Below, one piece after another: positions 35,152 to 58,421 of a DNA stretch of 64,000 bases (within the stretch, counting starts at the first letter, position 1; the number at the start of each line of letters is the position of its first letter). The stretch comes from Marsupella aquatica. Its lineage: Eukaryota; Plantae; Marchantiophyta. Where the stretch lies: the NCBI GenBank assembly GCA_973895155.1, contig OZ316898.1, positions 9,824,286 through 9,888,285 on the forward strand, written 5' to 3'. The position numbers were made by a program, and so were the translations under genes. The notes under the pieces are model-generated. The model did no database searches. It saw nothing but the letters and a program-made list of their open reading frames with translations, and had not been told where the DNA came from.

Positions 35152-38100
35152 TTGTTTCGTTGCGGCTTTTAAGGGAGGGTTCAGGATTTCAGTGCTGACA
35201 GTCACAAACCACAAGGGAATTGGATGGGAGCATCGGCGAAGTTGTCTTTGATGTTGTGATCGTTTGAGGCGTTGTTAGTGGGGACTGTCTACTGTAAAGA
35301 CATCTCAATCTGGTGGAAGAAATGGTTGATACAAGTTGATTGTGGGTTATGAAATGGTTCTCAATCTGATGGAAGAAAATGGTTGATACAAGTTGACAGT
35401 GCAATCTAGACCTTGCGAAAGGACACTAGTTATACTTAGTAGCGTGGTGAGAAGAATCGTGGCGAACTTCGTTGTTGCCTTGGATTTGGAGCGTTTCTGT
35501 GCTATGAAAGTCTTGAGAGACAGTGGATGAAAACAACATCATGTCTATGTCCTGAAAGAACTGGAGCAGGCCCGGAGTGCTTTGTCTTTAACTCTTCTAC
35601 AGTGGCTTGGGCGACGAGACAAAATGGCCAATTGGCAATTACTGGTCTTTCTGGTGAGCATGGCGGCAACGTCAATGGAGCTCCTCACAATTTCATTTCA
35701 GGCCCTCCAGGATATTCTCGGTCTGAACACACTTCCATTCTAGCTAGTCAGAACTCCCTTTCTATTTCTTTTCCATCCTGGCTCTATCTCAATGCATCCA
35801 CTCGTTACAGATTTGCTGAGTCAAGGAAGGCCGATCAGAAAGGCCAAATTTGCATATTGTACATAGCCATTGTGCAGCGGCCAGTCTCGTGGTCTTTGTA
35901 AGGTCCCGTAATGTGACAGCAGGTGCTCTGCAAATCGGGCAAGCTTCACTCCCTCTTGTGTGTCTCATTGTTTTGTCTCCCATCTGTTGCTTTGCGTCTG
36001 CCGTGTCTATGTGACGTGACATTGGAATGGACTTTTGGTCGGGCTCAGTAATCTAGAGAGGTTACTCAAGTATCTGTGAGCCTAAGGTCCAGATACTAAA
36101 TTAAATTCGGACATTTTAGAGTTTGGTATCGGAAGGCTGGATTGACTCAAGGTTTTGTGGAATTGTGTCACGTATCTCTAAGGATGGGGGTAACGACGCA
36201 GGGAATTTGATTGGACGAGATAGAGATTTGGGTTACATTGCAGCTTTGCACGTACTCTTCCTGCAGGACATAAATTGCTGACATTGTCAAAGATGAGGAT
36301 TGGAATTATGCCAATTTCCATAATGTCACTGAAAGTAGCGTTCTTAAGGTGATCCCATCTCAATATTGGGTTGAGATGATCCATCCAGATCTTTGTCAAA
36401 CATTGTAATCCATATGTTTTGTTTTTTTACCCTGAAGCAGCTTATGATCCATCCAGATTATTTGTCAAACATGGTATCCATCGTTCCATGTTTGACAACG
36501 AATCTGGACGTATCATACGGGGGAAAAAATGGTTTGCAAACCATGTACCTCAGGGTTTGCAGAATGGTCAGGACAGACTCACACAACTAACATGGACCGC
36601 AGCGAAACCCTCTTTTTGCTCAGATGATACATAACACACCAGAGAGTCAAATGTGATAAGGAACCAAAATATCTGAAATTTGTAGTTCTCCCAATTCTTA
36701 ATGAAAGTTGACTATATTGGATTTGTTGGAGAAAAAAGTCACAGTAGTTGAGCCCAAGAATATCCTATTTGGTTGCATTGCAATGGAATAATTTGCTGGT
36801 AAAAAGGTTGCCGAAGTGAGACGTGTGTTAAGCAGTGATGGTGTATACCCTGTCAAGTTCCATGGGGGTTAATAGATTTCATGAGCTTGGTCCATCCAAA
36901 CATCTTTTTACAACTGTAAATCCAAAACTTTCACACTTACGCTATATAGGGATAACTACCCGAAGGTCTTAATCGATGAACGTACATAACACCTCACAAA
37001 TTTTCCATCACAAAATTGGACAAGTGAGCCTGTTTTCCAGATTTGGTATATATATTTTTTCCCCTTCTAATCATAGTTTTCCTTTCCCAATGTTGCATAT
37101 TTTTCCTTTTAGGAAACGAGACATTATCAAATGGCCTGGCATCATGGGATCTCGCCGTGGTGGAGGCAAAGTAAATTGGTAATTCCAGAGAAATAAAGTA
37201 CCTATGAAAGTGAATTGTCCTGATTAAAATCTTCTTGAGAAACTCTCTTGGTGCTGGGCCTACCTAGAGTACCCTTACTTGCATTATTATTTTGTCAGTC
37301 TTATCTGTAATACGAAGTAGTACTTACTGTTACTAATGACGGGTGAGAACAACCTATCAACCCCTGGCTGCTCGAACCTCAAATACACAAAAGCGTTGTA
37401 AGTTGTCCCTCTTTTTTTTTTATACAAGACTTGCACAAGCATTGATTGCATAACTTAGCATGCCTTTGAGTAAGTTTGTCATTAAGACGAGAATAAACTT
37501 TCGAGTCAGACGTCGTCTCACTGTTTTCTATGATCTTTACTTATCACTGGGGTGTTGTCCACTTGCATCGTTACATCTATGCTCAAACCTCAATAGAAGA
37601 TTGTAATCAATTCTCCTTGCAGTGGATACATATTCGTCCTCACACAACAAGAGAATTTGAAATTCCTATTTGCAAAGGGCATATGATGATAAACCATAAG
37701 CCTCATCTCGTTCCCCACAGGAGGGCAGTCTTCCTCCCCCCCACCCTCCCACGGGTTAACGCACACACATAAATCATACAGTATTAAAAGAAGTCAGAGT
37801 ATCACGTCCATGTAGATAGGCTCACATCTGGCCTACCAAGCAAACGTGTTGATGGCCAGACTGCAGTCTGAGCCGGCTTTATCTTTTGATTACTCTCCTG
37901 AATTACATAACAATGCGATCCAAACTAAATTTAATCCCGAGTGCTTTGCAACCTGATTTCTGCATATGTACAAGTACCCAACAGTATGTGGTCAACAAAG
38001 CCTCCCTGTCCCGAGCTAGATGTGCAAGAGGTAAAGTGCAGGTTCACCTTGTGGAAAACTCAAAAGCTGCTCTCAAGTAGAAACTTGATTCCAGAAAATC

Positions 38101-38294
38101 TCATGCCAAGAGAACCAGGAGTTTGCAGTTCAATGTGCTGTACCATCTTCTGTTAGGCTATGTTACAAGTTCTTCCCGTAATCGGTCAAATTCTGTGATA
38201 GTACCTTGGGACAAGCATTGTTGATTGCTTCATCAGATTTGGTTTCAATGCCATATGGTTGCTGTTGCGTCTTAGCAATACTGTAACAGCTTTC

Positions 38295-41200
38295 TTAAGC
38301 TGCTTGGAAATCACCAAAATCTTCCTCATGCTCATGCTTCTTAGACTCGTCTGGTTTTTCTGAAGGTTCAAGCTGGAACTCACTACTTTGCGATAATCCA
38401 ACAGCGCCGCTCACAACAGGTGACCCAGTTAAGGTCTTGGGAGGAGTAGACGATTCCAATACAGGTGACAATGGGGGAGGTGGAGGGGGCGCAAGGATGG
38501 GAACTCCACGTCCACCTGACGCTGCTCTCAAAAGGCTAGCATGCTTTGGTGTCTCCGGCAGGGCATCTTGCAATGAAGAAACATCCATTTCTCTACCGAA
38601 CTTGTCCAGGCCACCAGAATCCCTTTTTGGCTGCATCCAAAGGCCACCGGGAACGACAAATGAATTAAGCTGGATCCAAAACGTTTGGACAGGGAAACAT
38701 CACAACGCAGGCAAGCCCATACCTATAGTATCAATCAACCGTTTCATACCTAACTGCAATACTCTGTACCCTCCGTCAGGATCCATCAGAAAACTAAAAA
38801 AAACATTCCCAAGTTCCCATGGGCAAAAAGGGAAATAACAATAGCTTAAAAACTGTGCGTAGTGAAGAACATGTCCGTAAAATCGATATTTTGCAATCAG
38901 TATTCTTACCGTTCTGATTTGCAGAGTAAGCGTCTCTCCTTCCTTGAGACTGTAGTCCGTCGATGGTCTCGATTGATATTCTTGCTCCATTTCCTGGGCC
39001 TCTTTTTTCTTGTTGAGATATCTAAGCTCTTGTCAAGGTACCATATATAGTGAATGATTTAAGTAGATCGTCACCCAACTTAGACTTGAGACTATTGCAG
39101 AAATTTCAAGGAGGGATAAAGGTTAGGGAACAAGGGAGTCAGCTGTACAAGTGACTAGAGTGGACTACAACAGTTTCTGCAAGCAACCATGGAAAGAAAG
39201 TTGAGACGGTCTGGATCACATGATATTCATATATAGATGAGAAAATGCACTGACTAATTCGTAAACGGACTCGTTCGTAAATCAGCAGAGTGGATACTTC
39301 ACATGGTCAAAAATTGCAGCTTGAAAGTCATATGCTTCAGGCCGTTCCCGGAATCCAAGACCAATGAAAGCATGTCTTCCATGTGCTGAATAAAAGCAAA
39401 AGAACAGAAAACCATACTCAGCCCCAATCTGCAATGCATTTCCTGTACCGCCAACGTGACTGGTCTCTCATCTCTCCTTTAGTAACAAATTGTTAAATAT
39501 TGAAAGACACTGCTAAAACTGTGCCCACGCTCTCCCTACTCTGCAAATTAGAAAGTACTTAATCGTTTAGGGTATCCAATTGAAGCTCTTGTGTAAGCCA
39601 TTGACATAATATTTCGTACTAGTGTATAGTATCACTTCATTACAAGCGTATGGTGCCTCAGAATTAGGCATAGTTTGACCACGAGCCATACCAATCAAAT
39701 TCGGAGTACAGTAAATAATGAAAAAGACAGGAATATCGAACAATAGCCCCAGAAAGGCAAAGAACAAGCGCTACTCACAGTCGGCGGATGTGTCTTCTAT
39801 ACGCAACACAAAGAACCTGCAATAAAGTCATGAGCAGTATCAGTTAGGAAATTCTACATGGCAGGGATCAAAACAACCGCACATCTCTGGCTGTGCTGAC
39901 GAGTGACATTCTTCACAGTTATGATCAGAGAAGGCTCAATGCAGCCAATGGGCCAGGTCAACATGCTAGAGAATTTTACCATATGATTATGTCCAAAACT
40001 GATAGCCCAACAAAATAATGATATTCCATAGAAATAAACTTCCTTCATTCTGTCACACAAGTACAGTAGTTCGTTTCAAAAACTGCACGATGCCACCGAA
40101 GTATTGAGATACATAAGGGTAGTGACCTAAATTTTCCGACTTTGTGATCCCTTCATAATTTAAGATGAACTCACCTACTGCTATCAATGACAGCTTCTAC
40201 TGGAAGAGGATAGTCCTCCCGCACAATTGCTTGAGCGTACAACTCTCCTGAATTCCAAATGAGAAACGGTCAGCGCTGCAACCGTCAAACCCATGAAAAC
40301 ACTCACGTACAACGCTAAATAAAATGATGTCAATGGCTAGCAACATGGTCACCTGCACAAAATTCCCTACCCATGTCCTTCGTAGAACCTCTTGCGCATC
40401 GGAATAGTGCAACATTTGGACAGGAGATATGATTCAGATGGCTGCAGCTAAGATGACGGCAATGTTTGAACGATTGCGTACCTGTTGTTTTGTCTTCCAG
40501 TCGTATAGAACACTCTTCTCCTTTGGAAACCACTCTCAAAACCCCCTCCCAATCCCATTTGTTTATGTTCCACTCGTCAGCTCTGAAACGGACAAACGCT
40601 AGAGCCTCAGGTGCAATCTATAAGCCCTACCAGTCTGTCTGGACGACTTGTGGACACCTACTTTCTCGTAGAACAGGACGTAAGATACGTGAGTCCGAAA
40701 AGATCCGACATGACATTTTGGAGGACCAGGAAGGGTAAGACTTACCTGTACGACGCAGCACTCTTCCGAGGAGGTATCTGGTCACATGAGTACGGGTAGA
40801 AATTAGGTTTGGTCTAAAGATGCTATGAGAAACATGGCAGACGAGATCATCAAGTGTTTCGCAACTAAAACAATTATGCAATACTTGATGCACCTGCCAA
40901 TGACAGTGACTCGAATGTCGAATCCAACTCGTTCCGATCAGCCACTTCAACCCCTAAGTCCAATGCATAGGAGCTACCGAGTCCACTGGTGATAACTCTA
41001 CAAGATCTGGCGATCAATTACCCAAGAAATCTACTACGAACAAGATTATGGTACCGACTTGCAGAATACATCGAACTCGAAATTAAAATAAAGAGTGGAG
41101 GGGACTATTATAGTTTAGCACGTGCTGGATGAAACGCTACACATTCAGACATGGGTATGGAGTTTCGAACAGAGTCCAGAGACGATGAGGGTAATTGGAA

Positions 41201-41416
41201 GAGGAAGGAAGTTCTATGGTCGATCGTCCGGGACCACACTAACGTTACATTTAATGAGATGACTACAAGAGATCTCCCCTACGAAGCACGCACCATGTAA
41301 ACGTAGCATTCTTTGACTTGGAACAACACCAAATCAGCGCTTTCCTGGGGATCACTTCCGATATCAGGTGACACGTCCACCACCTTCTCGTTTTCATTGG
41401 TCTCGTCTTGGCCCAT
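38295..41416 (-). CDS. NECAP: Adaptin ear-binding coat-associated protein (NECAP, PHear domain); 8 coding exons 41416-41294, 40777-40746, 40582-40482, 40247-40175, 39816-39779, 39385-39298, 39021-38910, 38630-38295
   Basis: Spliced protein reads VLFQVKECYVYMIPPRKSAASYRADEWNINKWDWEGVL...LEDKTTGELYA...VEAVIDSSRFFVLRIED...HAFIGLGFRERPEAYDFQAA...DYSLKEGETLTL...DFGDFQAA; all junctions GT-AG and in phase. Confidence 0.95.
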
Positions 41417-42474
41417 CCTTACTTGCTCAAAAGTTCAGGTTCATCCGTTCAAATGATAATCAGTGTCAATCCCGATCTTGAGTGAGTATTTGCCAGATCC
41501 CCTCAGAGGACAGATTTCACTCCTCGCGGCTTTCCCGTAATGCTAATCCCGCAATTCAATTCCTTTCAACCATTCCGTATCAATTCGAGATACTCTAGAA
41601 CTACGCTTTTGCTCAATTGCAGTCCAGACTTGGGAAGGACAACAAAACGCCTCCGATCGTGCAATTCAGTCATAAGTTCAACCCCACCGTCGTCCAAAAA
41701 ATCATCAGACTAGCATTCCACCTCGACAAAACTCCAGCCCAAATCCCAAACAAGCAAAACGCTCGCAACCTATGCCGTCATTTCAGTGATGATCATCGCA
41801 AACCAAGCACCATAGTCCACCACTCGGCTTCCTCGTCCTTTCTTTGCCGCCTGCAGACGTCCTCCGTCGCCACATACACAAATGCCCGCTCGGACAACAG
41901 CGTCCCACTGGTCTGCTGCTACTTTGAGCCCGCAATCTCGTCTCCTCGCAACGCCAGGACGACAAGACCAAGAAAAGGTCCAGTCCTATTCTCGGAAGCC
42001 GCACCAGGCTACGACGGAAGTACTCCTGCTCCCTCTGCAGTACCGTGACAATAATAAACAGAAGAATCAGCCGGTCAATAATCCACCATTCGGCGCGCCT
42101 AAGCCAGCCCCACGAGCAGCTGACCGAACAACAAATTGCAACCAAGAAACAGGTCTAAACACAACACCACTTGATTCCACGAACGACTTCTCGTCCTGTG
42201 CAATTACATTAAAATAATGCGAAGACGTGCGAGCAGAAGCGTGCAGCACGGACAGGGCGGAGGATGTGCTTGCCGACGGACGGCAACCCAGCTGTGGGCA
42301 GGAATGGAATGCAGTCACTACTACTACTACTACTACTACTACTACAGTAGGCAGGTACACGAAGTCCGCCATCGCCTCATTCTTACCTTTCCGATTTGTT
42401 TATTGAGATCCCAAATCTTCGACTGTTTGTTGCTTGGAATAGAGAAGTGAAGTGCTCATTTCGAGGTCAGATCC

Positions 42475-42960
42475 AAAGAACAGAAAGCGCCAAACGGGGT
42501 GACAAGATCCCAAAGCCGGAGACCCAATAAAGGGGAGAAGAAATCCGAGGCGATAGAAATCCGAAATCGCATCAATCAATCAATTAATCCAGACCCCAAG
42601 TGTTCGACTCTTTGCTGCTCAGGAGAGAAGAGAAGAGAAGAGAAGAGAAGAGAAGAGAAGTGTCCATTTCGAGGCATACAGCATACTGCCAAAGAACGAA
42701 CAGGAACCGAAAGCGTCAAACCGGAAGCTTGACAAGCTCCCAAAAGCAGGAGTAGGAGACCCAATAAAGGGGAGAAGAAATCAAAGTCAAAACGAAATCC
42801 GAATTCGCATCAATGAATCAAATCCTCACGGGCCCTAGGTTTGGTAGAATGATGCTGAAGGCGCAGAAAAAGAGAATAGGAAGAGGCTGAACGAGACCCA
42901 AAGGCACAAAAAGGAAAGGAAAGGAAAGGAAAGGAAAGGAAAGAGAGAGGAAAGGAGAAG
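42475..42960. repeat. Imperfect ~240-bp duplication, each copy followed by a purine microsatellite ((GAAGA)n, (GGAAA)n), upstream of NECAP
   Basis: gacaag.tcccaaa...ggagacccaataaaggggagaagaaatc...gaaatccgaa.tcgcatcaat at ~42500 and ~42730. Confidence 0.75.
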
Positions 42961-43144
42961 AGGGGGCGGGCAAGGATAGGACTGGGTCGTATGGGCCCCT
43001 TCCGAGGAAGACTAGAGAGCATATCCGAATATCCATACAAGCCAGTGGCAAAACCATGTCCTAGACACTTTAACACACCTTATGATATACAGTTTGGGCC
43101 ATTTGTGAGATCTATCTACGTACTTCTATGACTATAGTATGGAA

Positions 43145-43482
43145 GGGGGCCACACTCAATTACAGTATGTAGCATGGGCCACACTGAGGCATACTGAAAT
43201 TTGCAATCGAAGAGAGCCACACTCGTTTACAGTATACAGTGTGGGCCACACTCATTTACAGTATACAGTATGGGCCACACTCATCCATACTAAAATTTGC
43301 AATCACAGCGAGCCACACTCATTTAACAATATACATTGTGGACCATCCTTTTTGTGACGTCCATCAACCATTATCATATGGGATCCTCCTCACTTACAAG
43401 GGCTTGCAAAAGGAGGAAACAAGACTATGTCCAAAAAGGAGGAAACTAGACTATGCCCAAAAAGGAGGAAACTAGACTATGC
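43145..43482. repeat. Short tandem arrays: gccacact-rich ~95-bp unit x2, then 25-bp aaaaggaggaaac.agactatg.cc x3
   Basis: Direct reading. Confidence 0.85.
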
Positions 43483-44040
43483 CGTCAGATGTTTTTGCAG
43501 CCCATATGCCCGGCCATGTTGCAGCCAAGGCGGTCCGGCTCAAGGAGGAGGCCTATGTAGTTTGCTACCCGGCCGGGGGGATCTTTTCTACCCTTTTGCT
43601 TTGGGGGTTATTGGTGCTCTCCACCCTACCTCAACCAGTTCCTTCAGGCCCGTTCAGTTTTTTGCATTGAGAGGAGGCCGTTCTCCCATGTATCTGTTCT
43701 CACTGCCTTTTTTGGGCAACGGGTGTCTATTGTTCTTCTGCGGGCCCAGGCTTTCACCCTCCTTCATTGGGCCAAGGCAGTTAGTTTTAGAGCTTCTCGG
43801 CAGGTTCCACTTTGTGACCCTCCTATGTGATTTACTCTGGAACTCTATTAAGCATTTCAGTTCTCTCCTCAGTAGGGTGTTAGTCTTCTCGACTACTTTG
43901 TAGGTTATTTATTTGTGTCTTTGTTCCTTAATTGGCTTTCGGTTGGAAACTCCTTCACTTGTTGGACCCTTTGGTCTTCTTGGGGCCCTTTCCTCTCCTT
44001 TCCCCCCTTCATTGGGCTGCTTTGCCATTGGAATCATGTC
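43480..44040 (+). mobile_element. LINE-like dispersed repeat remnant (same family as 25200-25520 and 33003-33400)
   Basis: Shares blocks with both other copies; pyrimidine-rich 3' region. Confidence 0.55.
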
Positions 44041-47000
44041 TCCCAGTTTGGTATGTTTTACATACCCCCATGTATTAAGGATCCATTGGGAGCGTTGTAC
44101 GTGGTCCATAGGAGCTTCCAATTCATTGTATTTTTCTTTAGTCATAAAATTTTTGACAAAGGTATGTGAGAACCTTATTGATTTGGCTAGATTTGAGGAG
44201 AAACATTTGATTCACAACTACACTAGCCCTTGTAATGTAGTTAGATAAGATTTGGCAACATAATCCAAGGACAATGTCTCAGATTTTTAAATCTTTTTTG
44301 TTAAAAAACTTTCAATATTTTCCAGGTTAAAACATTTACTTGGAAAATTGACGGTCCCTTGAAGCTCAGGTTATTAGTGTTTTTAAATTTTTTCCCAATA
44401 TTTAGGTAAAAAACTGGCTAGTCGCATCAAGCTAGGCATGTGATTTCCATAAAAATTCTGCAAGTGCAGAAAAGTAATTAAATTTTGGATACAATCACAG
44501 CGGGAATCACAGGTAAGGTTGAGTAAACTATTAAACTATGAAAATAATCTTGATGAAAATTTCATTCAAATTTTTGAACTTGAATGAGATCTCAAAACAC
44601 TCTTTGTTTGAAAGTTTCTAAAGTACAGCTTTTATTCTAAACCCATATCACCCTAGTTAAATACAAGTTTATGTATGGCCCATGCAAGTATAGTAATTTA
44701 TTTAAGCAAATCATTTGTGATGAAGATAGAATCTGGGCTTATAGTTCTAACGCAAATTCTAAACATATATGTCTATATCTATTTAGATGTCTATATGCAT
44801 AATATTCCAACTGAAGTTATATAGAACCCCGGTATAGAACATGAAACCTAGAGAAACAGTTGTTGGCGTTTAGGTATAATATAGAGATTCTGGGCTCTAA
44901 TCCTTTAAAATATTATCTTTTAACAAAAGTGCAAGGATGTCAAAATGACTCTTTATGCAAGTTTAGAAAATAAACACCATAATTGAAAAAGTAATGAAAA
45001 GAAGGTAAACATAAGCAATGAGTTCAGAATACATGCATAGGAGAGTTCAAAATAATATCAAAATGGACAAAATAACCACAACAAAAAAAACATCATATGC
45101 TAAATAAAAATAAGAATATCAATTAGTGTGATGAACCAGCAGCCATTGGCTTGGGTGGGTAATTCAAATTGTTTGAAACGGATGATGAACCTTAGCTTGA
45201 GGGAGCTAGGGAGGGTCAGTGAGTGTCAAGGGTCAATCTCATAGCGCTTGGTCTAATGCTCTCTATTAGAAGTAATTGTGCTATGTACGACCGGAGTGAA
45301 ATCTTGAGAGTGTCCTACAATGACGTGGATTGGAACGGAGTTGCAATGGCCAAATGGAGCGCGCTTATGTGTAAAGAATTGTGCGAGAACATTGATCGAT
45401 GTTTAAATCGACAATGTACACTCCCAACATTGAAGAGTTGGACCTTACTGGGAAAGCTTCTTCTGTATGGATGGGGATGATTGACAACTTTTTTTTGACA
45501 GTGTGGGGATGAAGACATAGGTGCACAGGAGCCGTTGAGAAAATTAGTGAATGAATGCAACGAAAGCAGCAATATCAGAGTCAGATCGACACAGCCATCA
45601 GCGCTACCGTCAACAAAGACACTAATTGAATGTGAGCCTCACTGGATGACAGTGAAAGAGTTTTCCAGGGACTGTGATACAAATAAAAAAAAGAGCTCTA
45701 CATTGTTTTCAAATTCTGATGAAGCTAGAAGAGCACAAGTCCATGAGACCAGCAGAAAGTATCTACACCCCTAATGCGTCGGAGAGGGAGATGCCTATCT
45801 TTAATTCTGCCAAGCAACATCAAGTGAGTTCTTTCTCTTCCGTGACAAGCCAAAGAATCAATGAAGACTTTGTGTGTGCAAAGAGATGCATGTTAAAAAA
45901 TATGTGTGAATATGTAGATTATTTAGATGTGGCTAGAATGGCATCAATATATATCATCAAAGACTGCCTCAATACGGCTGAATGAACTTGAAAGTAAATA
46001 TGGTTCATAATTCTATCTTGGGTAGGAACAACGACAGTCATTCAGAGTTGCAAAGTAGTGGAAGCAGATTGCTATAATGCTAGTAAGGAGCTATGGTTCA
46101 GCTATTGATGTAAGAATTTGCCTATCCAATTGGAAACTTTTTTGTCAACAATGGATTGCAAGCACTGCAAGCTATTCCAGAGAACAGCTAATCAATTTTG
46201 TCATATCAATTTGTTTGACGTAATATAAGCTAATTTGAAGGTCCTTTAATTCCCTTCATTGCTGGCTCATGGATCGATATGAGGGACAGTACCAGAATTG
46301 CCGAAGACTCCTCCTTTCACCAACTATAGTGTAATTGCAATAATGTCAGCTGAGCTTTAGTTGCTACAAAAAGGAACAAAAAACAATTGGGTAGCAACAG
46401 AGGAAATGATCACAACTTCACAAAGAGTAACTTCCTAGCTCCTCAATCCATGCCACAAACATCACAACTGCACATACTAATTCTTACAAAATGTAAGTTA
46501 CATAAACCACCCTTACAACACTACGTAAACTAAAGTCCTCACAAACTGAAGACGTTACACAATCCACACGTTCCTTCAACCTGTACTATTTCAAAAAATT
46601 CAAAAATATAATGCAAAACACTGATATATCAATCAAGAGAATTCCAGAAGGTTAATTTCTTTAACCCTAGTCTTTATTCATTTCAAGTGTTACCCTTCAC
46701 CATTGTATTGTTTTTACAAATAGTAGGTCTAACTATTTTTTTTGTCATTCCACAAACACAAATCATTAGGATTTGTTTTTCTTGCAAAACCACATTTTCC
46801 TGTTTATGACTAACATTGCTGACGTGGCTCAACGTGGTGCCAGAGATTTTGGAAGGATCTTCCCATGGGGGGTCTGTAACAAGCACAAAAGTGAGTCAAA
46901 AAATTAATAAAAGAGTTGCAACATAGCTCTATTGACAATAACTGGAAGGAAGAATGTAACAAAAAGTCTGCTATCTTTTTTTTTTAGAGTATTTGCGTTT

Positions 47001-49322
47001 TGTGTAGTGAGTTGGTCATCTCTCAAATTATTTAGTGTGTTGAGGAAGTCAAATTGTAAGAAGAAAATTTTCAAAAAGTATGAAGGTGCTTAAGGTGTTG
47101 TGCAAGATTATATGGGTTATTGTGTTATTGTTAAGTCCATTGTAGAGGATTTGCATGGTTTAAATTTAAAGCTAAATTGGTCAAAGTAATGTCTTTTAAA
47201 GCCAAAAAAAAGTATCCCCAAAACTTTTGAGAGAATTGTGCATATTTTAAGGATAATATTATTGCTAGCTAAGCTCGCTAGCAATAATTTGATGTAGTAG
47301 TGAGATTTTTAGTTTAAAGTTTATCACAAATTGATTTTTTGATTGTTGATGTTGTTAGCAAGTCTCGCCGTCAATATTTTTCCATGTGTATTTTGATGAG
47401 TGTTCTTCCCAACAAGGTGTGAAAATACCCTGAACTTAGTTTGCTAGCAATATTTTCCCTCGCTAATAATATTGTTTTCTCATGTTTTCTGTTTCCTGTT
47501 TACTCACATCCTTAAAACCCCGGAAAGAAAGAATGAGAGATGACTTGCTTGGGTGAGGGAGGCTGGTAAACAGTGACAGGAACTGCTTGTGAGAGGGAAG
47601 TGGAAAAGGAAAACATGAAATAAAATTCTAATACAGTCTGGAACCCATTACTCATCTCATGGCTGGAATGTTCAGATCAGACAGACTTTGACCACCCAGA
47701 TGGAATCTCAAGGTATGTTCAAAAGTGCTCTAGTAAAACTGTTCAAGTCTCCTCCAGGCATTTTTGTTCCTTTGCAGTTTCAAAGAAATGAAGACCAGAT
47801 AGACCTCTAGGTTTGGCAAGATGCTCAGGCCGATGGATTTTTGCAACCCAAATGGACCAAATTTTACTCACAATGTCACATGGAATATTCCTAGTTTGTC
47901 CATCCCAATTTTGTGGTTTCTGTCTAGGGTCCATGGGAACGTCGTTTTCCAAGTTCTTACAGTAAATTTCTGTAACTCATATATTATTGTTGTTCATATA
48001 AATGGTTCCAATTCTGAGAGAACCTTTGATGCTATCTGAGCATTGTTTTTCATTTGTTCTGTCAAGTAAAAAACGATTCCTTACTTGGTATATTAAATGA
48101 AATATGATTTTTTATTTGTAGGAAATTTCAGTTATTTGTTTCAAATTTTGGGGAAGTCTTGCTGACACACTTATTTCTTCCCGGATTAAAATTGCCAAAC
48201 CACCCTATCTCAAAAGAATCAAATGTCTTCATTGAAAACCAGAGTTATTTTCCCTGAAAACTGTTCTTCTTCTTTTTTTATCGGATGTCCCCAAAGGGAC
48301 CCTGAAAACTGTTCTTGGAAGTCAACAATGGGGAATAGAACCCAAAGGCCATATTCCTTGAAAATCAACAGTCTCCGCTAGAGAACATAAATGGGCTGAT
48401 TCTAAACATTTCCTCAAGGACAGATGTCTTCAGGAGAGGTAAAAGCCCATTTAAGTGGTGATAGCATTTTCCTTTTTGTATCAACTGCCATAGCTCAAAA
48501 AAGCCAGATGCCTTTGGGAGAGGTCAAAGCCCATTCGGTGAAGGCATTTTCCTCTTTGTGTCAACCACCTTATGATCAATGCCTTTTGCACTGGCACAGA
48601 TGTCATGTTAAATATGACTAATTATGATCTATGGCGAGGCTAACACTTGGAGTGGCTTCAAGGAGAAGCCAAGCATGGTTTGTAGTGTGTTTGCCATATA
48701 ACTGGAGTGACATAAGCGATCCATTGTCTGGAATTAGAGTGGAAAAATTGGCTCTTAAAGATGTGCCTTGTTGGCCAAATCTTGACCCCTCATTGCCTTT
48801 TCATGTCTAGTTGGGACTCCCCTTTTTGCCAAATTTCACTGACGAAGGGCACACTTGTTTTTAAACATCAATTTATAGGGAGTCTAGGAGCCTCCAGACC
48901 CAAGAGCACACTTGGTAATGGGCATTAAGTTCACAGGTGTGACGAAAGCAACCCAGGTGTCAGCCTGTTAATGGACAGGGACCCGTCATAGCTTTTAATT
49001 ATTATATTCACTTTATCACTCAAGGCAAAAACCTTCCGCCAGAGAAGGCTTTGCATTGAAAAACCGAAAAGAACTGAATGTCACGTGAAGTGCGTGGGCA
49101 AATAATTTCCAAGTCAAAATCAAAGGCACACGTAGCCGAACTTCGAAATCAAAGCCAATCACAACAACAAAGATGAAGAAATTTGTTACCACTTGGATAT
49201 CATCCAAAGCTGCAGAGCAGAAGCAGCTGCAGTGCTGATGAGTCCATAGCGTGGACCCATGGAAGATGAGCATTCAGCAGCTGCAAGAGAATTGATGCTG
49301 TCAACGCAAGGCTATTGAGAGA

Positions 49323-49353
<31 letters not shown>

Positions 49354-49373
49354 TCCAAGGAACTCGAATCCGG

Positions 49374-49807
49374 ATGCAAAGCAGCAGTGGGTCGAGTGCT
49401 ATGCCAAAAACCGAGGGACCCAATAATCCTGCAGCGGAGAATAGTGTCATGAAGCCACATGAACAGGATCCGGAACCTGCCGCTGCAGGAGACGGCATTG
49501 ATGGCGGTGATCCAGATAAGTCGACGACAGCAGCACCCTCTGTGAAAGAATGGGCTGACGAAATTCGTGATGACCACTCAGCACCATCTGCATCTGTATC
49601 CACATCTGCTCCACAGGAGACGAAGAACCAAGCAGCTGTTCCTGAGAGCCGTTGTTTTGGTGGGTGCACGGCGTCCATCAAATTTTTTTTGAATAAGCTG
49701 CGCGTCAGTTATGAGACTGCAGCAGCTTCTCGTCGTTCGAAATCTCAATCACAACCTTCCGATTCGCAGCAAGATCCTAAAGCAGTAAGTACTTCTGAAG
49801 CATTTTC

Positions 49808-49840
<33 letters not shown>

Positions 49841-51272
49841 AGAGAGATATCTCACTTCGTTTGAGCTCTAAAAATCACACTCTTTGCTAACTGACGAAGC
49901 AGTACATGAACTCAATCCAACGCCCGTTTTGTTCGATGTGCACACATTCGATCCACGCACTGCCTGCCCAACGAGCTGAGCTGTCCAATGTATGAAGAAA
50001 GAAAGGCCAAGGCTAGTCAAGGTAATATCGAGGGCTTCAAACCGAGTTGCAGCGTGATCTTCAGCTGGGCGCCTTACTGTAGTTAGGAAAGAAGCCAGGT
50101 GGGGTAGTTGAATGACCGAAAGGAAGCATGCTCATTTGATGCGTCTAGCTGGCCAGCCCTTTCTGAAGTCATTGCAGAGTTGAGAAAAGTGGCAGGCCGA
50201 GAAAAATGGAGAGGGAGAGTGGACGCAAGACAGCAGCCAGGATTGAGTTGCCGAGATGGATGTTGCTCGATATAAAAACTTACGTCCATTTCGTCTAGCT
50301 CGATTTTGGGGACCGAGACATCACAAGTTTCCTAGATCTAGCATACAAGAGAGTCTCACGCACACCCCTACCATCTGGACTGGAACTACATATATGTTGC
50401 ATCTTCAAGCGATGGAACTGTGACTGTCACAGTTCCTTCGGAGGGTGCCCTCGCCGGAGCCAATTGAACAAACCCATAACCGTCAATACTACCATTGGCT
50501 AGAGAGTGATGACGCTGTTGCACATTTCTTTCCTTCGCGTTTGCCACAATTATTACAAAAATTTTGAGCTGAACTTTTGGCGGAGATATGTGTGGAAATG
50601 GTGCATCGATAACAAGGGAGAGATATCATCTAAGTCGATGGATGAGGGAATTGGACTGCCTTAATTCTGTTTGGGACTGATCTCTATTCTGAAAGCTGGC
50701 AAGTGTTTTGGGATCCTCTGTCCTCGTGTCGTTCGAAATGACTTAGTTCTGTTTCCGAAATATATTAACCCACACATATGTACCAACCATATCTCAAGTA
50801 TGCATTACGGCTAGAAGAGACCATGTTCTCCCAAACATTTTTGTTGTGATATTAAACATCGACTTGAATTTCAGGTACTGTTACCTTTCCGGTAGGGAAT
50901 TTCATCATCTCTATCGATGAACGTGTTTTCATTCACGCACGTGACTAGTTGACATAGCTAAGACATTGTAATTCCCAAGCTCCTAGTAGCACGCATTCGC
51001 TCTGTATTGGCGGTTTTCTAATCTACAGTTTTCGGGTGCAGAGTGGGAATTCTGTTGCAGTGGATCATACGACTAGCTCAGGCACGCCACAACCTGCAAG
51101 TCAGAATGTGCTGAGCACACAGTCTGCACCAGGCCCAACCCATACGAGTGTGACTGGAAATGAGGCAAGCGCTGCGAAATCTCACGAAAGTTCTACAGAT
51201 CATCATATCGTAAGACTCCCAAGGGCGACCCCGGTGCCACCTAAAGGCCGTCCAAGTCCAATCCATAATTAG
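49374..51272 (+). CDS. Putative peptide precursor (~213 aa; exons 49374-49784, 51042-51272) ending in IDA/IDL-like motif RLPRATPVPPKGRPSPIHN*
   Basis: Phase-0 donor GTAAGT at 49785; acceptor GTGCAG at 51041 with CTAAT branch site at ~51018; C-terminus resembles the IDA EPIP peptide LPKGVPIPPSAPSKRHN. No signal peptide in this model, so the first exon is uncertain. Confidence 0.55.
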
Positions 51273-51699
51273 ACTGTACAGGCTGGACCGACTGCATACG
51301 ACTCTCAGCTGCAATAAATCGCACTTGTGAATCACCAGCTTCCAAGAGGGGCCCAGTTGCCACCCACAGGCAGCAAAGTCCAATCCAGGATGAGAGTACA
51401 GGCTGCCATTCGTGAGACGACTGCCTTGAAGGCGGCTCAAGTGCCACCCACTGGCAGTCGAAGTCCAACCCACAGTAATGCTAAAGTGGGCAATCGGCAT
51501 CAAGAGAACTGTCGTAAATGGCACCTTAACCAGCTTCCAAAGGAGACCCATTTGTCAGCCACAGGCAGTCCAAGTCCAATTCATAATAAGACTACATCGG
51601 AAACTCAGCAGCAACAGCTAAGATAAATCACGCCAAGTGATTCACCAGCTTCCAAGAGGGGCCCAATTGCCACCCACAGGCAGTCCCATCCACAACTAG
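51213..51699 (+). repeat. Five tandem IDA-like peptide-coding modules
   Basis: Modules start at 51213, 51336, 51418, 51531, 51646; consensus (R/Q)LP(R/K)xxx(V/L)PPTGSPSPIHN. Confidence 0.85.
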
Positions 51700-52217
51700 C
51701 CTAATGGGTGGGATTCAGTATCACAGTAGCCACACAGAGAAACATCGAAGGGAGTTCAAGAAATTGTCGAATGCTCTCGTGTTCTGATTACAGATGCCCA
51801 AGCTCCCCATAGTTCCCTAACTATCTCGCAAATTTCTCATCTTTGTGATTTTCAGTGCATAACATAAATTAGTTCCTATTCGTACACCTGGGAGTTTTAG
51901 TCTCAAATTGTAAGACAAGTATCTGTCTTCGCTGAAAAGGAGTAATATGCTCTTGCAGTGTGTTGCTTGCATGACGTGAAATGCTAAGATTCTCTCTCGT
52001 ACTGAGTGTATTGAGTCTAACCTACGGGCTTTTTGAGCACCTGGGGCAGAGCCATGTGTACTAATTAGCGGTCCTTCTAGTTTCCCAGTGAGCTCTGAAC
52101 AGAAGTCCTTATGATTCTCATAAACGCTCTTGTTTCAGAATCTGGTTCGTGTAGGCATGGCCGCAGTAAGCTCATCCACACGACTCCTTGATCACAGAAA
52201 TAAGTGGTCCTAAGCTT

Positions 52218-52297
52218 TGTCACGTGCAATAGCGCGCTGCTTGTAGAAATAAAATCTGTCACGTGCAGTAGCGCCCTGCTTGTAGAAATAAAATCTC
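52218..52297. repeat. 39-bp tandem duplication containing G-box CACGTG
   Basis: tgtcacgtgca.tagcgc.ctgcttgtagaaataaaatct twice. Confidence 0.85.
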
Positions 52298-53912
52298 CCA
52301 CTGCGAGGGACGGGGCAAATTGCAATTGACGCGCATGCGTGTTTATATCCAGAAGGAAATTCCCACTTCACGTGGTTTTGGACAAGTTTTCAGCTAGAAT
52401 TTTCAAACATCTCCGTAGACGAGTCTACTTGATTGAGCCTGGTGCAAATCCAGTTTCAAGAGATCAACAGGTTTCAGATGTTGCACAGTGGCACGTTGAA
52501 AATGTCGAGGGCAAACGAAATTTATATTCTATCAGTGTCAAGTACTCAGATGGAAAGCAGTAAACGAAGTTCCCTCCGTTCTCGGCAATCCTGCTGTGTT
52601 CGGCCCACCTAAGCACGAATCCCTACGCAAATGTACACAGTGCTCGTAGTCGTTTGGCTGAGTTTACGATGGCTTATCTGCATCCACCTTGAACTCTAAA
52701 GAACTACGATGCACAAAAAATTTACCGGAGGTGGCTGTTTAGCTCTCGTTGGATGTTCATGTTAAAACTCGTGGTCTTATTCCACCTGAGTATGCGCTAC
52801 GGTGTCAATATAACTCTCAGTTCAATTGAAATTTACACTCGGCCATACAATCTTGAGAGGTAACCATTTAACCAATAACTCCCAGACGGCTGCAGTTCAA
52901 ATTCCGCAAAGTCATACTTCCGTTGTCGGCGAATCATTCTAGCTGCCACTACGCTGATACCAAAGTTAAGAGTGACAGATGATGGACAGAAACACACAAA
53001 ATAATGAGTCATCTCTTTATTGCAAGCCACATAGATAATAGGAGCAAATTTCCTTGTATCTTATCACTTCTCACGCAAAATACAGTAGTCTCACCAAGCT
53101 TGACGACCTACAACCTTCAACATTCATCAAAATTCACAGAGAGCGTCACGAACAAAGGGAACGCGAAGAAAGGGAAATAGCCGCATAGCTGGTTGTACAC
53201 GAGGAGACAAATCTACTCAGATCATGTGAGATGGCAAATAGCATGTTGGCACTTATTATATTGCATCCTTCAAAAGAGAAACACTCAGATCACATGATTG
53301 AACATGGTCATGAGCCCATTATATGGTGGCCTGAGGCGCTCGAGCTAAAACCAACCTCAAACCCAAGCTCTCAATAAATAATGGCTTTAATTGTCCTCTG
53401 CGGGGACTATTGCATTAAAACCTCCTTTCACCCTGCATCAAGCCACTCGTGAGTTAGTATCCAGTTCAAGATCATGGTAGGTACACAGATGGCTCTACTG
53501 AAACCGAAACAGAAGGAAACCTGCAATGCCCTCCTCACCTTGACGGATAGAATGCTCCTCACAAGGACTTCCGGAGTAAGCCTAGGCTAGAAAGAAATGG
53601 CTACAAACATGGCATTCAAGGTTGAAAATACTCACAGGCATCATTGATGCGGACACTAACATTCGTCCCGATAACTTCCAGGCTCGAAATTCCTTCATGA
53701 CATTTGGCCTGAATCCTCTACTCTTAGAAGTTGACATGATTCCAGTACTGGTCCAACACTCGAATAATACATATACCATCTCTGCCTCAGCGTCGCCCTT
53801 GCGAGACCGCAGCTTCACTTAACTCGCGACCACACTAAAAATAGCCACAAAACACAGAAGACCAGCACCGACTTAGCTGGATCGCTCTTAGGACCTGCCA
53901 AAAATGACTGAT

Positions 53913-56900
53913 CTAGCTTCTCCCTGAAACGTTGGACGGCACAGACATTCCAGCGCCACGGCCATTCTTCTCGAGTCTGCGCAGACCCACGAAAAAGTCA
54001 GATACATCCTGGATTGACCCTGTCATAACATCAGCAAGGAAACCCTCGCTGTATAGCCTTCGCACACTGAAAGATCCGATCCGACTATCCCAGTGGGCAC
54101 AATCACGTTTCAATGTTTGCGAGACGCAGTCAAGGCTATGAACTAAAGTTCTCAGTCAGTATGATGTGCTCCCCGAGTAATCAGTAAGTCGCGAACACGC
54201 CGGCTCTTGGCCGCCAAAAACCTTCACAACTTTTGAACGCCTTGCACCTCAGGAGGCCAGTACTCCTTACTAGCAAACTGGGTTAGACTAGAAGGTTTCT
54301 CTGTACATCACGACATCCGCCTATGTGCTGTTGTATTCACCAAAAATGACAGCATGTGTAGTGCTAGTTTTAAATCTTATACATGGGATCCAAGGTCACG
54401 TGATCTAGCAATATCAAATTCCATAAAGATTATGAGAGCTGTGAGGTTTGACGTACGAAGGTGCAAGACGACCAAGGCTCCTAAGTTCGGAGCCAGTAGC
54501 TTCTTCGACGACTCTTCCTTCAATCTCGATGAGGTACGACATCTCTGGCGTATCTGGGAGTCCACGGCGACATAATTTCTCTTTATCCACATGATGGAGC
54601 TCCCTACCGTTCACAAAAATGCCAGTCCGACCAGCAGCACAATCCCTTGTCATGGGATAATTGAACTCTTCAATAAAAGGCTGCAGCACAAGTTGAATGA
54701 ATGCGTAAGACAGCTCAGAGAACAGATTTCGAATACGGTGCAGCGACTAAGCAAGGATTCCCAATTATAATTTAAGACAGTTCCTGAAGCCTGCCAAGTC
54801 ACGAATTGACATGATGTACAGTCGATAGGTTGGGTCGCCTTACAGGAATAATTCCAAGGCATTGACCTCCTGCCACACCCCAGAATCCAGCTTGACTGTC
54901 ATACCTGCCACAAAAATTCATAAGCTAAACTTCAATTCCATTGAATATGGCATATTGTGAGGCTCCCCTCAACCTTGCTACTGTCGACCAGCGCAAGCCA
55001 AAATGACATGAACCTAGCGTACTATGTATTGACAATGTTGGGAAAGCTTGTCAGTGTCTTCTTGAATCGAGGTAAGAGATACTCACCAGTAAGTGCCAGG
55101 ATAAATAGGACCTGCCTGTTCTTCAGCCTGCTTCACCAGATGATCAGGTATGGGCTTGCCATTGACTACAACCTTTCTACGATAGTGAGCTGCGCTAGCC
55201 TGCCAGCTCTTCCTGAATATAAATATACGATTCAGTGTTTTGTTCAAACCCCGTGGTGCTTCATGCACTTGCTCATTCGTTGCATCAGCAGAAGCACGCC
55301 CAGAAGTCGTCGGATTCTGCTGGGTCGAACGATTCGGTAGGGGCGGAGGAGATCTGGAGTTTAAGTGATTCAACTGTGGAGAACCTGCGGCCGACAGTGT
55401 TCGATGCATAGAATCACTATCAGAGTCACTCAGGATACCCTCTGAAGATGGCTTACGTTCTGGTGCTGGCAATCTGTGACCAGCATTTACATTTAGAGGT
55501 ATAGTATTGATGTACCTACTAGGGTGAGGAGAGGAAGGAGATTCAGTTTCTGAACCCGTCGAGGCACCATCTAGGGCTAGGTTTGCTGGAAGATTGACGT
55601 TAATTGAAAGGTTTTCAACTCTCTCGTAGAGTGCTCTCTCCTCCAAGAGGTCTTCACCTATGTCCTTCAAATCCTCGTTGCCAAGAGAATGCTTCCTGAT
55701 AAGAGGCGTTTGGGTTTGGGCTTGGACTTGTTGGACTTGTTGCTTCCTTTCAGCGAGATCAGAGACAGAGTACCTGCGCATACCCCGTTCGTTCTCACCA
55801 GCACCGAGAGAATCGCTGACGGGTCTGAAAGTTGAGGTGAATTCCGCCTGAGAGTCGGGACTGGAGGCTAACAAACCAGCACCGTTGTTTGGCAGCGAAT
55901 GGGACCTTGAAGAAGAGTTATAAACCTGCAAGGAATTGGAGCCCTCCGTTCGCGGGATAGAAAATGTCGATATCTTCTTGCAGGAACCACAACGTAATTT
56001 CTGCGTATTTTTTTGGTTAGCAGGAAGGTTTTCGGGAACTGCCAAAAGTACCCCACAATGGTGACACAGAACTTGCTGCAACGCACCTGGGGGAGGCAAT
56101 GGAGGATAGAGCCCCTGCTTGGGTGGGAGTTGGCCAGTTTGTAATTGTCCTCGCACAGAAGAGGCTAACCTAGACTGGAAGGGATGCAAGGATGACGGTT
56201 CTGGAAGGTAGGAACGAGGATGGGAAGAAGAATTCGGTGACCACTGGGAAGGTTGGACATATCTGTTGACCCACGGCTGCTGGGGCCCAAGCAAAGGGTT
56301 ACTAGCAAATGGGTTCGTCTGCCTGCTGTAATTGTCATACATAGAGGTTGAGGTGGTTAATGGACGACCTCTGCCTTTGTTATAATCTCTTCCGCTTGGA
56401 TCCGAAGACGCCCTTGGGAGATAATCTGCCTGCTGGCCACTCCCATAGTCCTGACTTGAAGACTTCTGGCGAACCGATAATGGAGTCTCTCTTAGTGGTC
56501 CCGTGTGGCCAGGTCCTGCTGTCCCCACAGTAGAAACTCTATCGTCCCAGCTGTGTCTCCGAGCTGCTACATTAATCAACCTAGTAGCATTATCGATGTC
56601 GTTGTCCAGGCTCGCCGTCTCTCTGTGTGAGCTATACGAACTGCTCTCCTCCGAGAGAACACCTCTGTTACTCGAAGTGCTGCTGGATCGTGGAATGAGA
56701 CGTCTGGACACCGGTTGAGAAATGCCTTGGTCGACGATGGCACGGGGATGCGGCTCCATTTCACCAGAAAATTGCCCAGAGCCAGCTCCTCCTGGGCTAA
56801 TCTCCACTTCCTCCAGAGTTGTGGAGGAGGTGTCACTCGGTTCGTAGTCCAGCTGAGCCACCGAGTTCTCGTACATGTCTAAAGGTCTATGGGAGTGCTC

Positions 56901-58421
56901 TGAAGGAGTGCGCATGAATTGCTGCTGCTGCCCTGCTGCTCGTGCTACTTGTTCATTCTCGCTCAAAGAACGTCTACTCTTGTGTCCATTTCTCCAGTCG
57001 GGCACGACGTAGTCCACCGACGTGCTCTCCTTGACACTCGCGGTGGACGTCACATCGTCCTGCGAGCTCCCGTCATCGTCCGCTCCCGATGAGGTCGCTT
57101 CCTCCCCCGAATCGGACTCTCGGGCTTTCCAACTGAGTTTCCGACGAGACACTACTGAAGCAATATTGCTTCTCACAGCCATTGGTGGCTGGGAGCCATG
57201 GGCCTCGTTGCTACTAGACTCGTGGCCACTACGCAGAGATCCGAGGTCATGATGGTGGTTGTAGGCGTTGCTTTGCACAGAATCCAGAGCGAAACCAGGA
57301 TGATTTCGCTGCTGCACGTGCGATACTCGTAACTGCTGCTGGGGAACCTCGCTGGTGATGAAATCGTTTCCATTATTAGTAGTACGAGACTCGGCCGATG
57401 CGAGGGTTGTTTCGGTTCCGTATGACTGTGCCCCCACACTTGGCATGGTCTTCAACTCGCCTGAGGAGGTTTCGTCTGTGTGCTGTTGGCTGCGAACTTC
57501 AGTTCGCTGCTGGACTTGGATAAGAGACCCATACGATGCGCGTGGGTCGGAGCTCGAGGACCAATGTTGTTCTCTGGATGATGCAAGTTCCTTCTGTTGG
57601 GAAGCTCTGGGTGACGATTCAAAAACACGGTGCATCATGTCCTTCTCCTGATTTCTCAAAGATTGCAGGAATGAATCACTCAAAACCATACCGGCATCTA
57701 GGGCGGAATGTTGTTGTTGCTGAGGCTTCGTCACTCCCCAGCCGACATCCCTTGGACGCATTCCATTCTCGGGGACAATTTCCTGCCTATCCTTATAAAT
57801 AGGTGAATCAATTCCGCTTTCTGTTAAGTCGTACTCATCTGCGACATCACTTCCTATCTCACCAGACGAGGAGTCGGAGTACAACGAGTTCCTTCTCCGC
57901 TGCTCAGCACTGATCCGCCGATTCGCAGCTTCCAAATCTCTCGGTGTTGCGTGCTTGGCTGAATGACAGAGGGCATGGCAAACTTTCAACTTTGAACGCA
58001 ATGCATGGATCTTTCTTTGACACAGATAACCACTTTTCAGGAGAGAGGACCAAGCACCGGTGACAAGATTTACCCATCAGGCGCCTTATTGGTTGAGGAC
58101 GAGCATACAGAAAAGACGAAAGAAAGTTGAAGTACAACCAAGGCGACGAATTGAAATAGACAAACACTGCAAAGCATCTGAACTGACTGGAACGACTACA
58201 AATCGCAAGGATGCTACAATTCCATCACGCTATGATCTATGGACTCATTGAACACCACGCGAAAATCCATCGCCTGAGGACACAGCATAATACAAACCTT
58301 GAAGAGTTGTAGAGCAATTTCCACACTGATAAATAGGGTAACCTGGAGGAGGCTCTTGGAGAATTGAGCGGCACTTGGGACACTTAACAATTCTGGGTGC
58401 TGTGGGTGGCAGTGTTGGCAT
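53913..58421 (-). CDS. EDR4-like/DUF3133 zinc-ribbon protein with C-terminal XLG-like domain, ~1114 aa; exons 58421-58298, 57958-55087, 54904-54844, 54680-54457, 53976-53913
   Basis: N-terminal RIVKCPKCRSILQEPPPGYPIYQCGNCSTTLQAK; internal CHHC...QKLRCGSCKKIS; C-terminal VVVNGKPIPD...AGPIYPGTYWYDSQAGFWGV...CLGIIPPFIEEF...GIFVNGRELH...RGLP...SLGRLAP; all introns GT-AG and in phase. Confidence 0.92.

Follow-up and report, generated by a model that had tools for sequence, protein, structure and literature searches.

A 64,000-nucleotide window of the liverwort Marsupella aquatica (assembly GCA_973895155.1, contig OZ316898.1, positions 9,824,286 to 9,888,285; coordinates below count from its first letter) contains, at 51213-51699 on the forward strand, a module of about 57 nt that occurs five times in diverged form. 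The copies lie in three reading frames, and their translations resemble the signalling peptides of the IDA family. On balance, we favour the explanation that this array is the tandemly duplicated 3' end of a liverwort gene of the MpIDA type, with the first module as the working copy.

Structure of the module array

The modules (M1 to M5) were identified by three-frame translation and by alignment of each copy in its own frame, with indels treated as breaks. Their coordinates and readings agreed with those given in the preliminary description of this DNA, and were as follows:

51213-51272, forward strand: M1, RLPRATPVPPKGRPSPIHN followed by TAG; closes the open reading frame (ORF) at 51036-51272 and is alone among the modules in being joined to a long ORF.
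51336-51394, forward strand: M2, QLPRGAQLPPTGS, then a 1-nt deletion after 51374 and SPIQDE; HN changed to QD, without a stop; a decayed copy.
51418-51482, forward strand: M3, RLP, two additional nucleotides, then KAAQVPPTGSRSPTH-S-NA; head frameshifted, I changed to T and a Ser codon added between H and N; a decayed copy.
51531-51590, forward strand: M4, QLPKETHLSATGSPSPIHN followed by AAG; tail intact, PP core lost (SA) and Lys in place of the stop.
51646-51699, forward strand: M5, QLPRGAQLPPTG-SPIHN followed by TAG; in another frame, intact, without one AGTCCA hexamer (2 residues).

The consensus of the modules is LP[KR]-x4-[LV]PPxGx-PSPIHN. The AGTCCA hexamer is present twice in M1-M4, which places one extra residue between G and PSPIHN, and once in M5. 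The head of M2, the tail of M3 and M4 are contained in a 99-codon ORF (51327-51626). No ORF leads into M5, which has an in-frame TAA (51622-51624) 8 codons upstream of its QLP.

The start-to-start spacings of the modules are 123, 82, 113 and 115 nt and are mostly not multiples of three. A repeat search of the window identified three direct-repeat families that connect the modules; the divergence among the copies was too great for the program TRF to detect the array. M1-M2 recurs as M4-M5 318/310 bp downstream, and M1 reads CAT AAT TAG ACT where M4 reads CAT AAT AAG ACT, both as previously described. The head of M2, together with 11 nt upstream, is 96% identical to M5 over 47 nt, and the tails of these two modules differ. 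The heads of M4 and M5 show six codon differences, all of which are non-synonymous. A piece of the spacer following M1 (..CGACTGC..) recurs as the apparent RLP head of M3. A degenerate PSPIHN pattern had four matches in the 64-kb window against 0.59 expected; 1 of 100 shuffles reached four matches. Beyond the array the window held just one chance site with a single mismatch.

Family assignment

Members of the IDA family have a signal peptide, a variable region and a C-terminal EPIP-like motif (PMC4526919), and the maturation site of Arabidopsis IDA (AtIDA) is YLPK-GVPIPP (PMC13082318). The MpIDA1 peptide of Marchantia polymorpha is printed as EVPPQGPSPIHN and that of AtIDA as PIPPSAPSKRHN by Furumizu et al. 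2021 (PMC8462819), who report IDA homologues for Marchantia, Anthoceros and Selaginella, not for Physcomitrium, describe bryophyte IDA and CLE peptides as nearly alike, and cite Bowman et al. 2017 for the first identification of the Marchantia homologues.

The proposal that the modules are of the IDA/CLE type is supported by their predicted translations, which carry a motif of the IDA type. A Pro-rich EPIP/PIP-like motif with a central Pro and a terminal His-Asn, comparable to those of AtIDA and MpIDA1, is present at the C-terminus of M1 (..LPRATPVPPKGRPSPIHN before the stop) and M5 (..LPRGAQLPPTGSPIHN before the stop). The putative maturation site combines a basic and a small residue and reads LPR/A in M1, LPR/G in M2 and M5, and LPK in M3 and M4. 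Relative to MpIDA1, the array modules have the same PSPIHN end, the same PP-x-G core and the same central Pro, with 9 of 12 residues matching, and the C-terminal PSPIHN of M1 is identical to the published end of that peptide. PSPIHN had been put forward as a new intermediate between IDA and CLE; it is the known liverwort IDA ending (PMC8462819). With Arabidopsis IDA and IDL, the ligands of HAESA/HSL2, the modules have in common the LPK/R-G site, the [IVL]PP core, the central P-S and the C-terminal HN (PMC4526919, PMC13082318). In these proteins the motif lies at the extreme C-terminus of a Cys-free, variable precursor, as is predicted for M1.

Of the canonical 12-residue register, in which PP occupies positions 3-4, Pro position 7 and HN positions 11-12, the modules keep only Pro7-x-Pro9-Ile-His-Asn. 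The residue added after G shifts the PP of M1-M3 by one position towards the N-terminus. It is present in M4 as well, where SA stands in place of the PP, and M5 has two residues fewer. M1-M4 thus have one residue more than MpIDA1 between G and PSPIHN (a 13-mer register), whereas M5 is one residue shorter than MpIDA1. The array further differs from MpIDA1 and MpIDA2 in its four additional module copies behind a stop, in a comparison that covers the printed MpIDA1 peptide. It differs from Arabidopsis IDA in that it has SPIHN in place of SKRHN and an extra residue, and in that the Arabidopsis precursors are single-motif.

The ending P-x-P-[IL]-H-N is common to the modules and the CLE peptides. 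However, the CLE motif (R/H-x-x-P-x-G-P-x-P-[LI]-[HS]-[NH]) has adjacent G-P where M1-M4 have G-x-P; the modules have no conserved Arg or His at position 1, and an LP[KR]G extension is typical of IDA, not of CLE.

Precursors with several motifs are known in PIP/PIPL (two SGPS motifs), CEP (up to five) and CLE18 (PMC4526919). These likewise carry tandem short C-terminal modules at one locus, but their motifs lie in one ORF behind one signal peptide, whereas the array occupies three frames, is interrupted by stops at 51270, 51315 and 51624, and includes two degenerate copies.

Spacer stops and duplication history

The spacers that follow M1 and M4 contain related elements:

51313-51318, forward strand: AATAAA, poly(A)-signal-like, 41 nt past the M1 stop; contains TAA (51315-51317) in frame with M1.
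51624-51626, forward strand: TAA in frame with M4, within GATAAAT, a homologous element after M4.

A GTAAAT, related to this (A/G)ATAAAT spacer element, precedes M4. As the M1-M2 and M4-M5 spacers have a homologous in-frame TAA, the modules were separated by a stop before the duplication of about 310 bp. This argues against the preliminary description's account of an ancestral polyprotein that was cut short by a single TAG after M1. If the TAG were replaced by AAG, the frame would still close 12-15 codons on, before the next module. Furthermore, TAG directly follows HN in both M1 and M5, so that a stop at this position is at least as likely to be ancestral as the AAG of M4. The TAG after M1 and M5 and the common spacer TAA indicate that the repeat unit carried a stop and untranslated sequence. 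The duplicated unit would have been about 115-123 bp in length, comprising a peptide module, its stop codon and a short piece of 3' untranslated region with an AATAAA-like element. Most simply, the 3' end of the gene would have been duplicated in tandem repeatedly, and a deletion would later have occurred at the M2/M3 boundary.

Comparison with independent contigs

The stretch was compared with contigs from four runs (X1-X4) that derive from two studies and carry two organism labels (organism A, X1 and X3; organism B, X2 and X4, from the second study). The organism A contigs were identical to the window across the array, including the indels. In organism B, the X2 contigs were identical over 50845-51468 and 51559-52076, and X4 showed only two single-nucleotide polymorphisms (SNPs) in the array, at 51430 and 51435, both in M3. 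The interval 51469-51558, which includes the end of M3 and the first 28 nt of M4, is a contig break in organism B, and the cross-check covers the rest of the array. The array indels are therefore not assembly errors of one data set. Read depth at the array was that of its flanks, and the locus is accordingly single-copy.

In the M1 exon described below, X4 showed a single SNP, 51135 C>T, which changes Pro to Ser in the variable region. By contrast, within 50743-50845, in the presumed intron upstream, X4 lacks 2 nt, has five nucleotides (TGACT) inserted after 50783 and lacks a further 21 nt at 50824. Downstream of the array, one contig form of organism B (X2, X4) has 16 other letters in place of the 310 bp at 52077-52386, and another form matches the window. 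This interval is a presence/absence polymorphism; terminal inverted repeats were not found there, and it holds a 39-nt tandem duplication (52211-52288) with CACGTG boxes.

Gene model and proposed processing

Two candidate exons were identified:

51042-51272, forward strand: candidate last coding exon of an IDA-like propeptide gene; open frame 51036-51272, acceptor-like gtgcag at 51036-51041 (boundary 51041/51042).
49374-49784, forward strand: candidate upstream exon, 137 codons from ATG; followed by a GTAAGT donor (49785) in phase 0, which would keep the frame across the acceptor at 51042.

The open frame at 51036-51272 has 78 codons. Within it, the candidate last exon comprises 57 codons of a variable region rich in Ser, Thr, Pro and Gln, followed by M1 and TAG. 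The predicted product of 76 codons is Cys-free, as befits the small, Cys-poor precursors with a variable middle that characterise IDA and IDL. In its codon usage, the frame of this exon was the best of the six. Codon usage also favoured the proposed frame of 49374-49784; no other upstream candidate combines a canonical GTAAGT donor with the right phase. This exon begins MQSSSGSS.., is not hydrophobic and has no signal peptide, and is regarded as a putative partner of the M1 exon. A (GCT)9.7 microsatellite (49323-49351) lies just upstream of its ATG, and an (AG)19 microsatellite (49809-49847) begins 24 nt past its donor; the contigs of all runs break at both. An X3 contig starts at 51037, beside the predicted acceptor. 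This is not evidence for the exon, since X3 shows GATC/GANTC ligation junctions.

The M1 and 49374-49784 exons were used as separate queries in database searches. A phmmer search of 1.84 billion representatives with the M1 exon product returned one irrelevant low-complexity match (E = 6.8e-4), and the ESM atlas gave no match for this product. No homologous proteins were found for the M1 exon, the 49374-49784 exon or the 99-codon ORF in a search that covers only proteins of 0.55-1.75 times the query length and is thus of low information. Pfam gave no match for either exon or for a 157-codon minus-strand ORF. The exact products of four ORFs of the window are not on record in the public gene collection. 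The variable region of a propeptide would be expected to lack detectable relatives, as the M1 exon product does.

If the gene is active, its precursor would be secreted and, by analogy with the cleavage of Arabidopsis IDA after YLPK, may be cut by a subtilase after LPR. This would release a Pro-rich peptide of about 13-15 residues ending in His-Asn, with a PVPPKGRPSPIHN core. Hydroxylation on proline would follow, the candidate hydroxyprolinated peptides being PVPPKGRPSPIHN, ATPVPPKGRPSPIHN and GAQLPPTGSPIHN. Such a peptide could then be bound through its C-terminal HN by a leucine-rich repeat receptor kinase of the HSL (HAESA-like) clade with a SERK co-receptor, a step modelled on Arabidopsis IDA-HAESA and on the MpIDA-MpHSL2 models of Furumizu et al. 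(PMC8462819). No receptor gene is present in the window.

In this model, M1 alone would still be attached to a coding exon (51042-51272), with M2-M5 left behind the stop and variously decayed.

Observations weighing against the proposed model

Two groups of observations run counter to a single working copy followed by untranslated duplicates. The first concerns the pattern of substitution. The ratio of non-synonymous to synonymous differences per site (pN/pS) was 0.22-0.80 in all ten module pairs, and of the variable columns 7 fell at first, 7 at second and 13 at third codon positions (one-sided p=0.08). The two independent contrasts, M1-M4 and M2-M5, likewise gave p=0.08. The SPIHN segments of M1, M4 and M5 show four synonymous and no non-synonymous changes (p about 0.002-0.004, depending on the transition bias, for a stretch that was chosen post hoc); M5 has three synonymous and no non-synonymous differences from M1 in this segment. 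Copies that were non-coding from birth should diverge regardless of codon position. The synonymous bias expected by the preliminary description was thus present in direction and weak in statistical terms. It provides weak evidence that some module copies were or are translated, and leaves some room for a past or alternative use of M4 and M5. In addition, the 96% identity between the heads of M2 and M5 points to gene conversion or constraint.

The second group concerns the gene itself. There was no credible signal-peptide exon among all ATG ORFs of 38000-51200, so none could be attached to any module. A feature that defines the IDA family is thus unproven for this gene, and M1, too, could be dead. 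A 21-codon candidate at 47080 was rejected because it lies in AT-rich sequence at a distance of 4 kb and its phase is wrong, and another at 48424 was rejected as an ORF derived from a repeat. The latter corresponds to a short tandem duplication at 48424-48580 (unit of about 75 nt, GGAGAGGTNAAAGCCCATT...TTTCCTNTTTGT), the translation of which mimics a hydrophobic N-terminus. The organism B contigs have loose ends nearby (48589/48593), suggestive of a rearrangement or an insertion at this site. The four runs containing the stretch are DNA or Hi-C contig sets. Finally, the fit to a receptor is uncertain owing to the extra residue in M1-M4 relative to MpIDA1 and AtIDA.

Alternative explanations

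The strongest competitor, which we hold to be possible though clearly less probable than a working M1, is that the whole locus is a relic: M1, too, would be what is left of a dead IDA-like gene, with neither a signal peptide nor expression, and decay would extend to all five modules. The ATG-ORF scans of the 13 kb upstream, without a signal-peptide exon, would be explained in this way, as would the lack of homologues of either candidate exon, the one-residue excess of M1 over the MpIDA1 register, and the finding that the runs matching the stretch are all DNA or Hi-C and none RNA. However, a blank search of RNA runs is no proof of silence. M1 retains its LPR, PP, central P-S, HN and stop in a 78-codon open frame with an acceptor-like site and coding-like codon usage, and the synonymous bias suggests that the module tails are, or at least were, under constraint.

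It is unlikely, in our estimation, that the locus yields or once yielded several HN-ended ligands, either through the use of the tandem terminal modules as alternative 3' cassettes or by descent from a true multi-IDA precursor. The cassette version, itself rather improbable, was prompted by the following splice-site-like sequences:

51210-51215, forward strand: GTAAGA, donor-like hexamer directly before M1, after ...HHI, phase 0.
51336-51338, 51531-51533 and 51646-51648, forward strand: candidate CAG acceptors.

Splicing from GTAAGA 51210 to the acceptors before M2 (51338), M4 (51533) and M5 (51648) would give, besides M1 from the unspliced transcript, LPRGAQLPPTGSPIHN and a stop via M5 and, via M2, a tail of three modules (the M2 head, the M3 tail and M4). 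The donor-like site aligns where M2, M4 and M5 have ..ACCAG/CTTCCA, and all of the joins would be in frame at LP[KR]. The SPIHN and stop of M5 and the SPIHN of M4 differ from M1 just synonymously, and the M2/M5 identity begins 11 nt upstream of the putative acceptor. Against this, gene conversion accounts equally well for that identity, the acceptor regions are not pyrimidine-rich, and the AATAAA at 51313 would terminate transcripts before M2. The tail of M2 is dead, and M4 has lost its PP core and has six non-synonymous codon differences from M5.

The second version, an ancestral multi-IDA polyprotein encoded in one ORF with a signal peptide, later cut off by the TAG that follows M1 and disrupted by indels, appears improbable. 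It would account for the persistence of the M2 head, the M3 tail and M4 in one 99-codon ORF, for the AAG of M4 at the position of the M1 TAG, and for an overall pN/pS below 1, and it has a precedent in the multi-motif precursors of the related PIP, CEP and CLE families (PMC4526919). However, the homologous spacer TAA is older than the M1-M2/M4-M5 duplication, M5 keeps its TAG as M1 does, the unit lengths (123, 82, 113 and 115 nt) are not generally multiples of three, and the 99-codon frame crosses frameshifted parts that do not encode the motif. The related suggestion of a multi-peptide family overlooked by gene finders was not supported, given that M2 and M3 are frameshifted with their HN lost or altered. 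No intact multi-module relative was found in the protein searches or in DNA scans of metagenome contigs, which have little power for short peptides. The first of these degenerate scans gave no match, and the two loci returned by the second (L001, L002) were dismissed as bacterial chance matches.

A non-coding tandem repeat that resembles IDA by chance, or coding on the minus strand (157-codon ORF at 51078-51551), is very improbable: although that ORF is the longest of the region and the forward-strand reading has no database match, 9 of 12 residues match MpIDA1 with LP[KR]G upstream and a stop right after HN in two copies, and the minus-strand ORF, which has poorer codon usage and no Pfam match, was rejected as the codon-aligned antisense of Pro, Ser and Gly codons.

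Neighbouring genes

Two longer ORFs were noted elsewhere in the window:

55083-58001, reverse strand: 972-codon ORF with an EDR4-type zinc-ribbon domain (PF11331, E = 9.6e-9); the nearest atlas clusters are streptophyte EDR4-like proteins.
4661-6097, reverse strand: 478-codon ORF from ATG with ankyrin repeats; the public gene collection has no entry for its exact product.

Significance

The IDA-HSL system is one of the few peptide-receptor pairs that can be traced to the common ancestor of land plants. To our knowledge, its role in bryophytes is unknown, and only a handful of bryophyte IDA genes have been described. The locus reported here is most likely an additional liverwort IDA-like gene end in a 13-residue register, with an unusual trail of four decaying module copies. 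As it stands, it represents an ordinary member of the IDA family followed by an unusual pseudo-module trail. If the modules do serve as alternative cassettes, or descend from a multi-IDA precursor, the IDA family would gain its first reported multi-peptide locus, and if M4 or M5 were expressed through splicing, one locus would diversify IDA ligands. The locus catches the duplication and decay of peptide modules in progress, and with it potential raw material for multi-motif precursors such as those of CEP, PIP and CLE.

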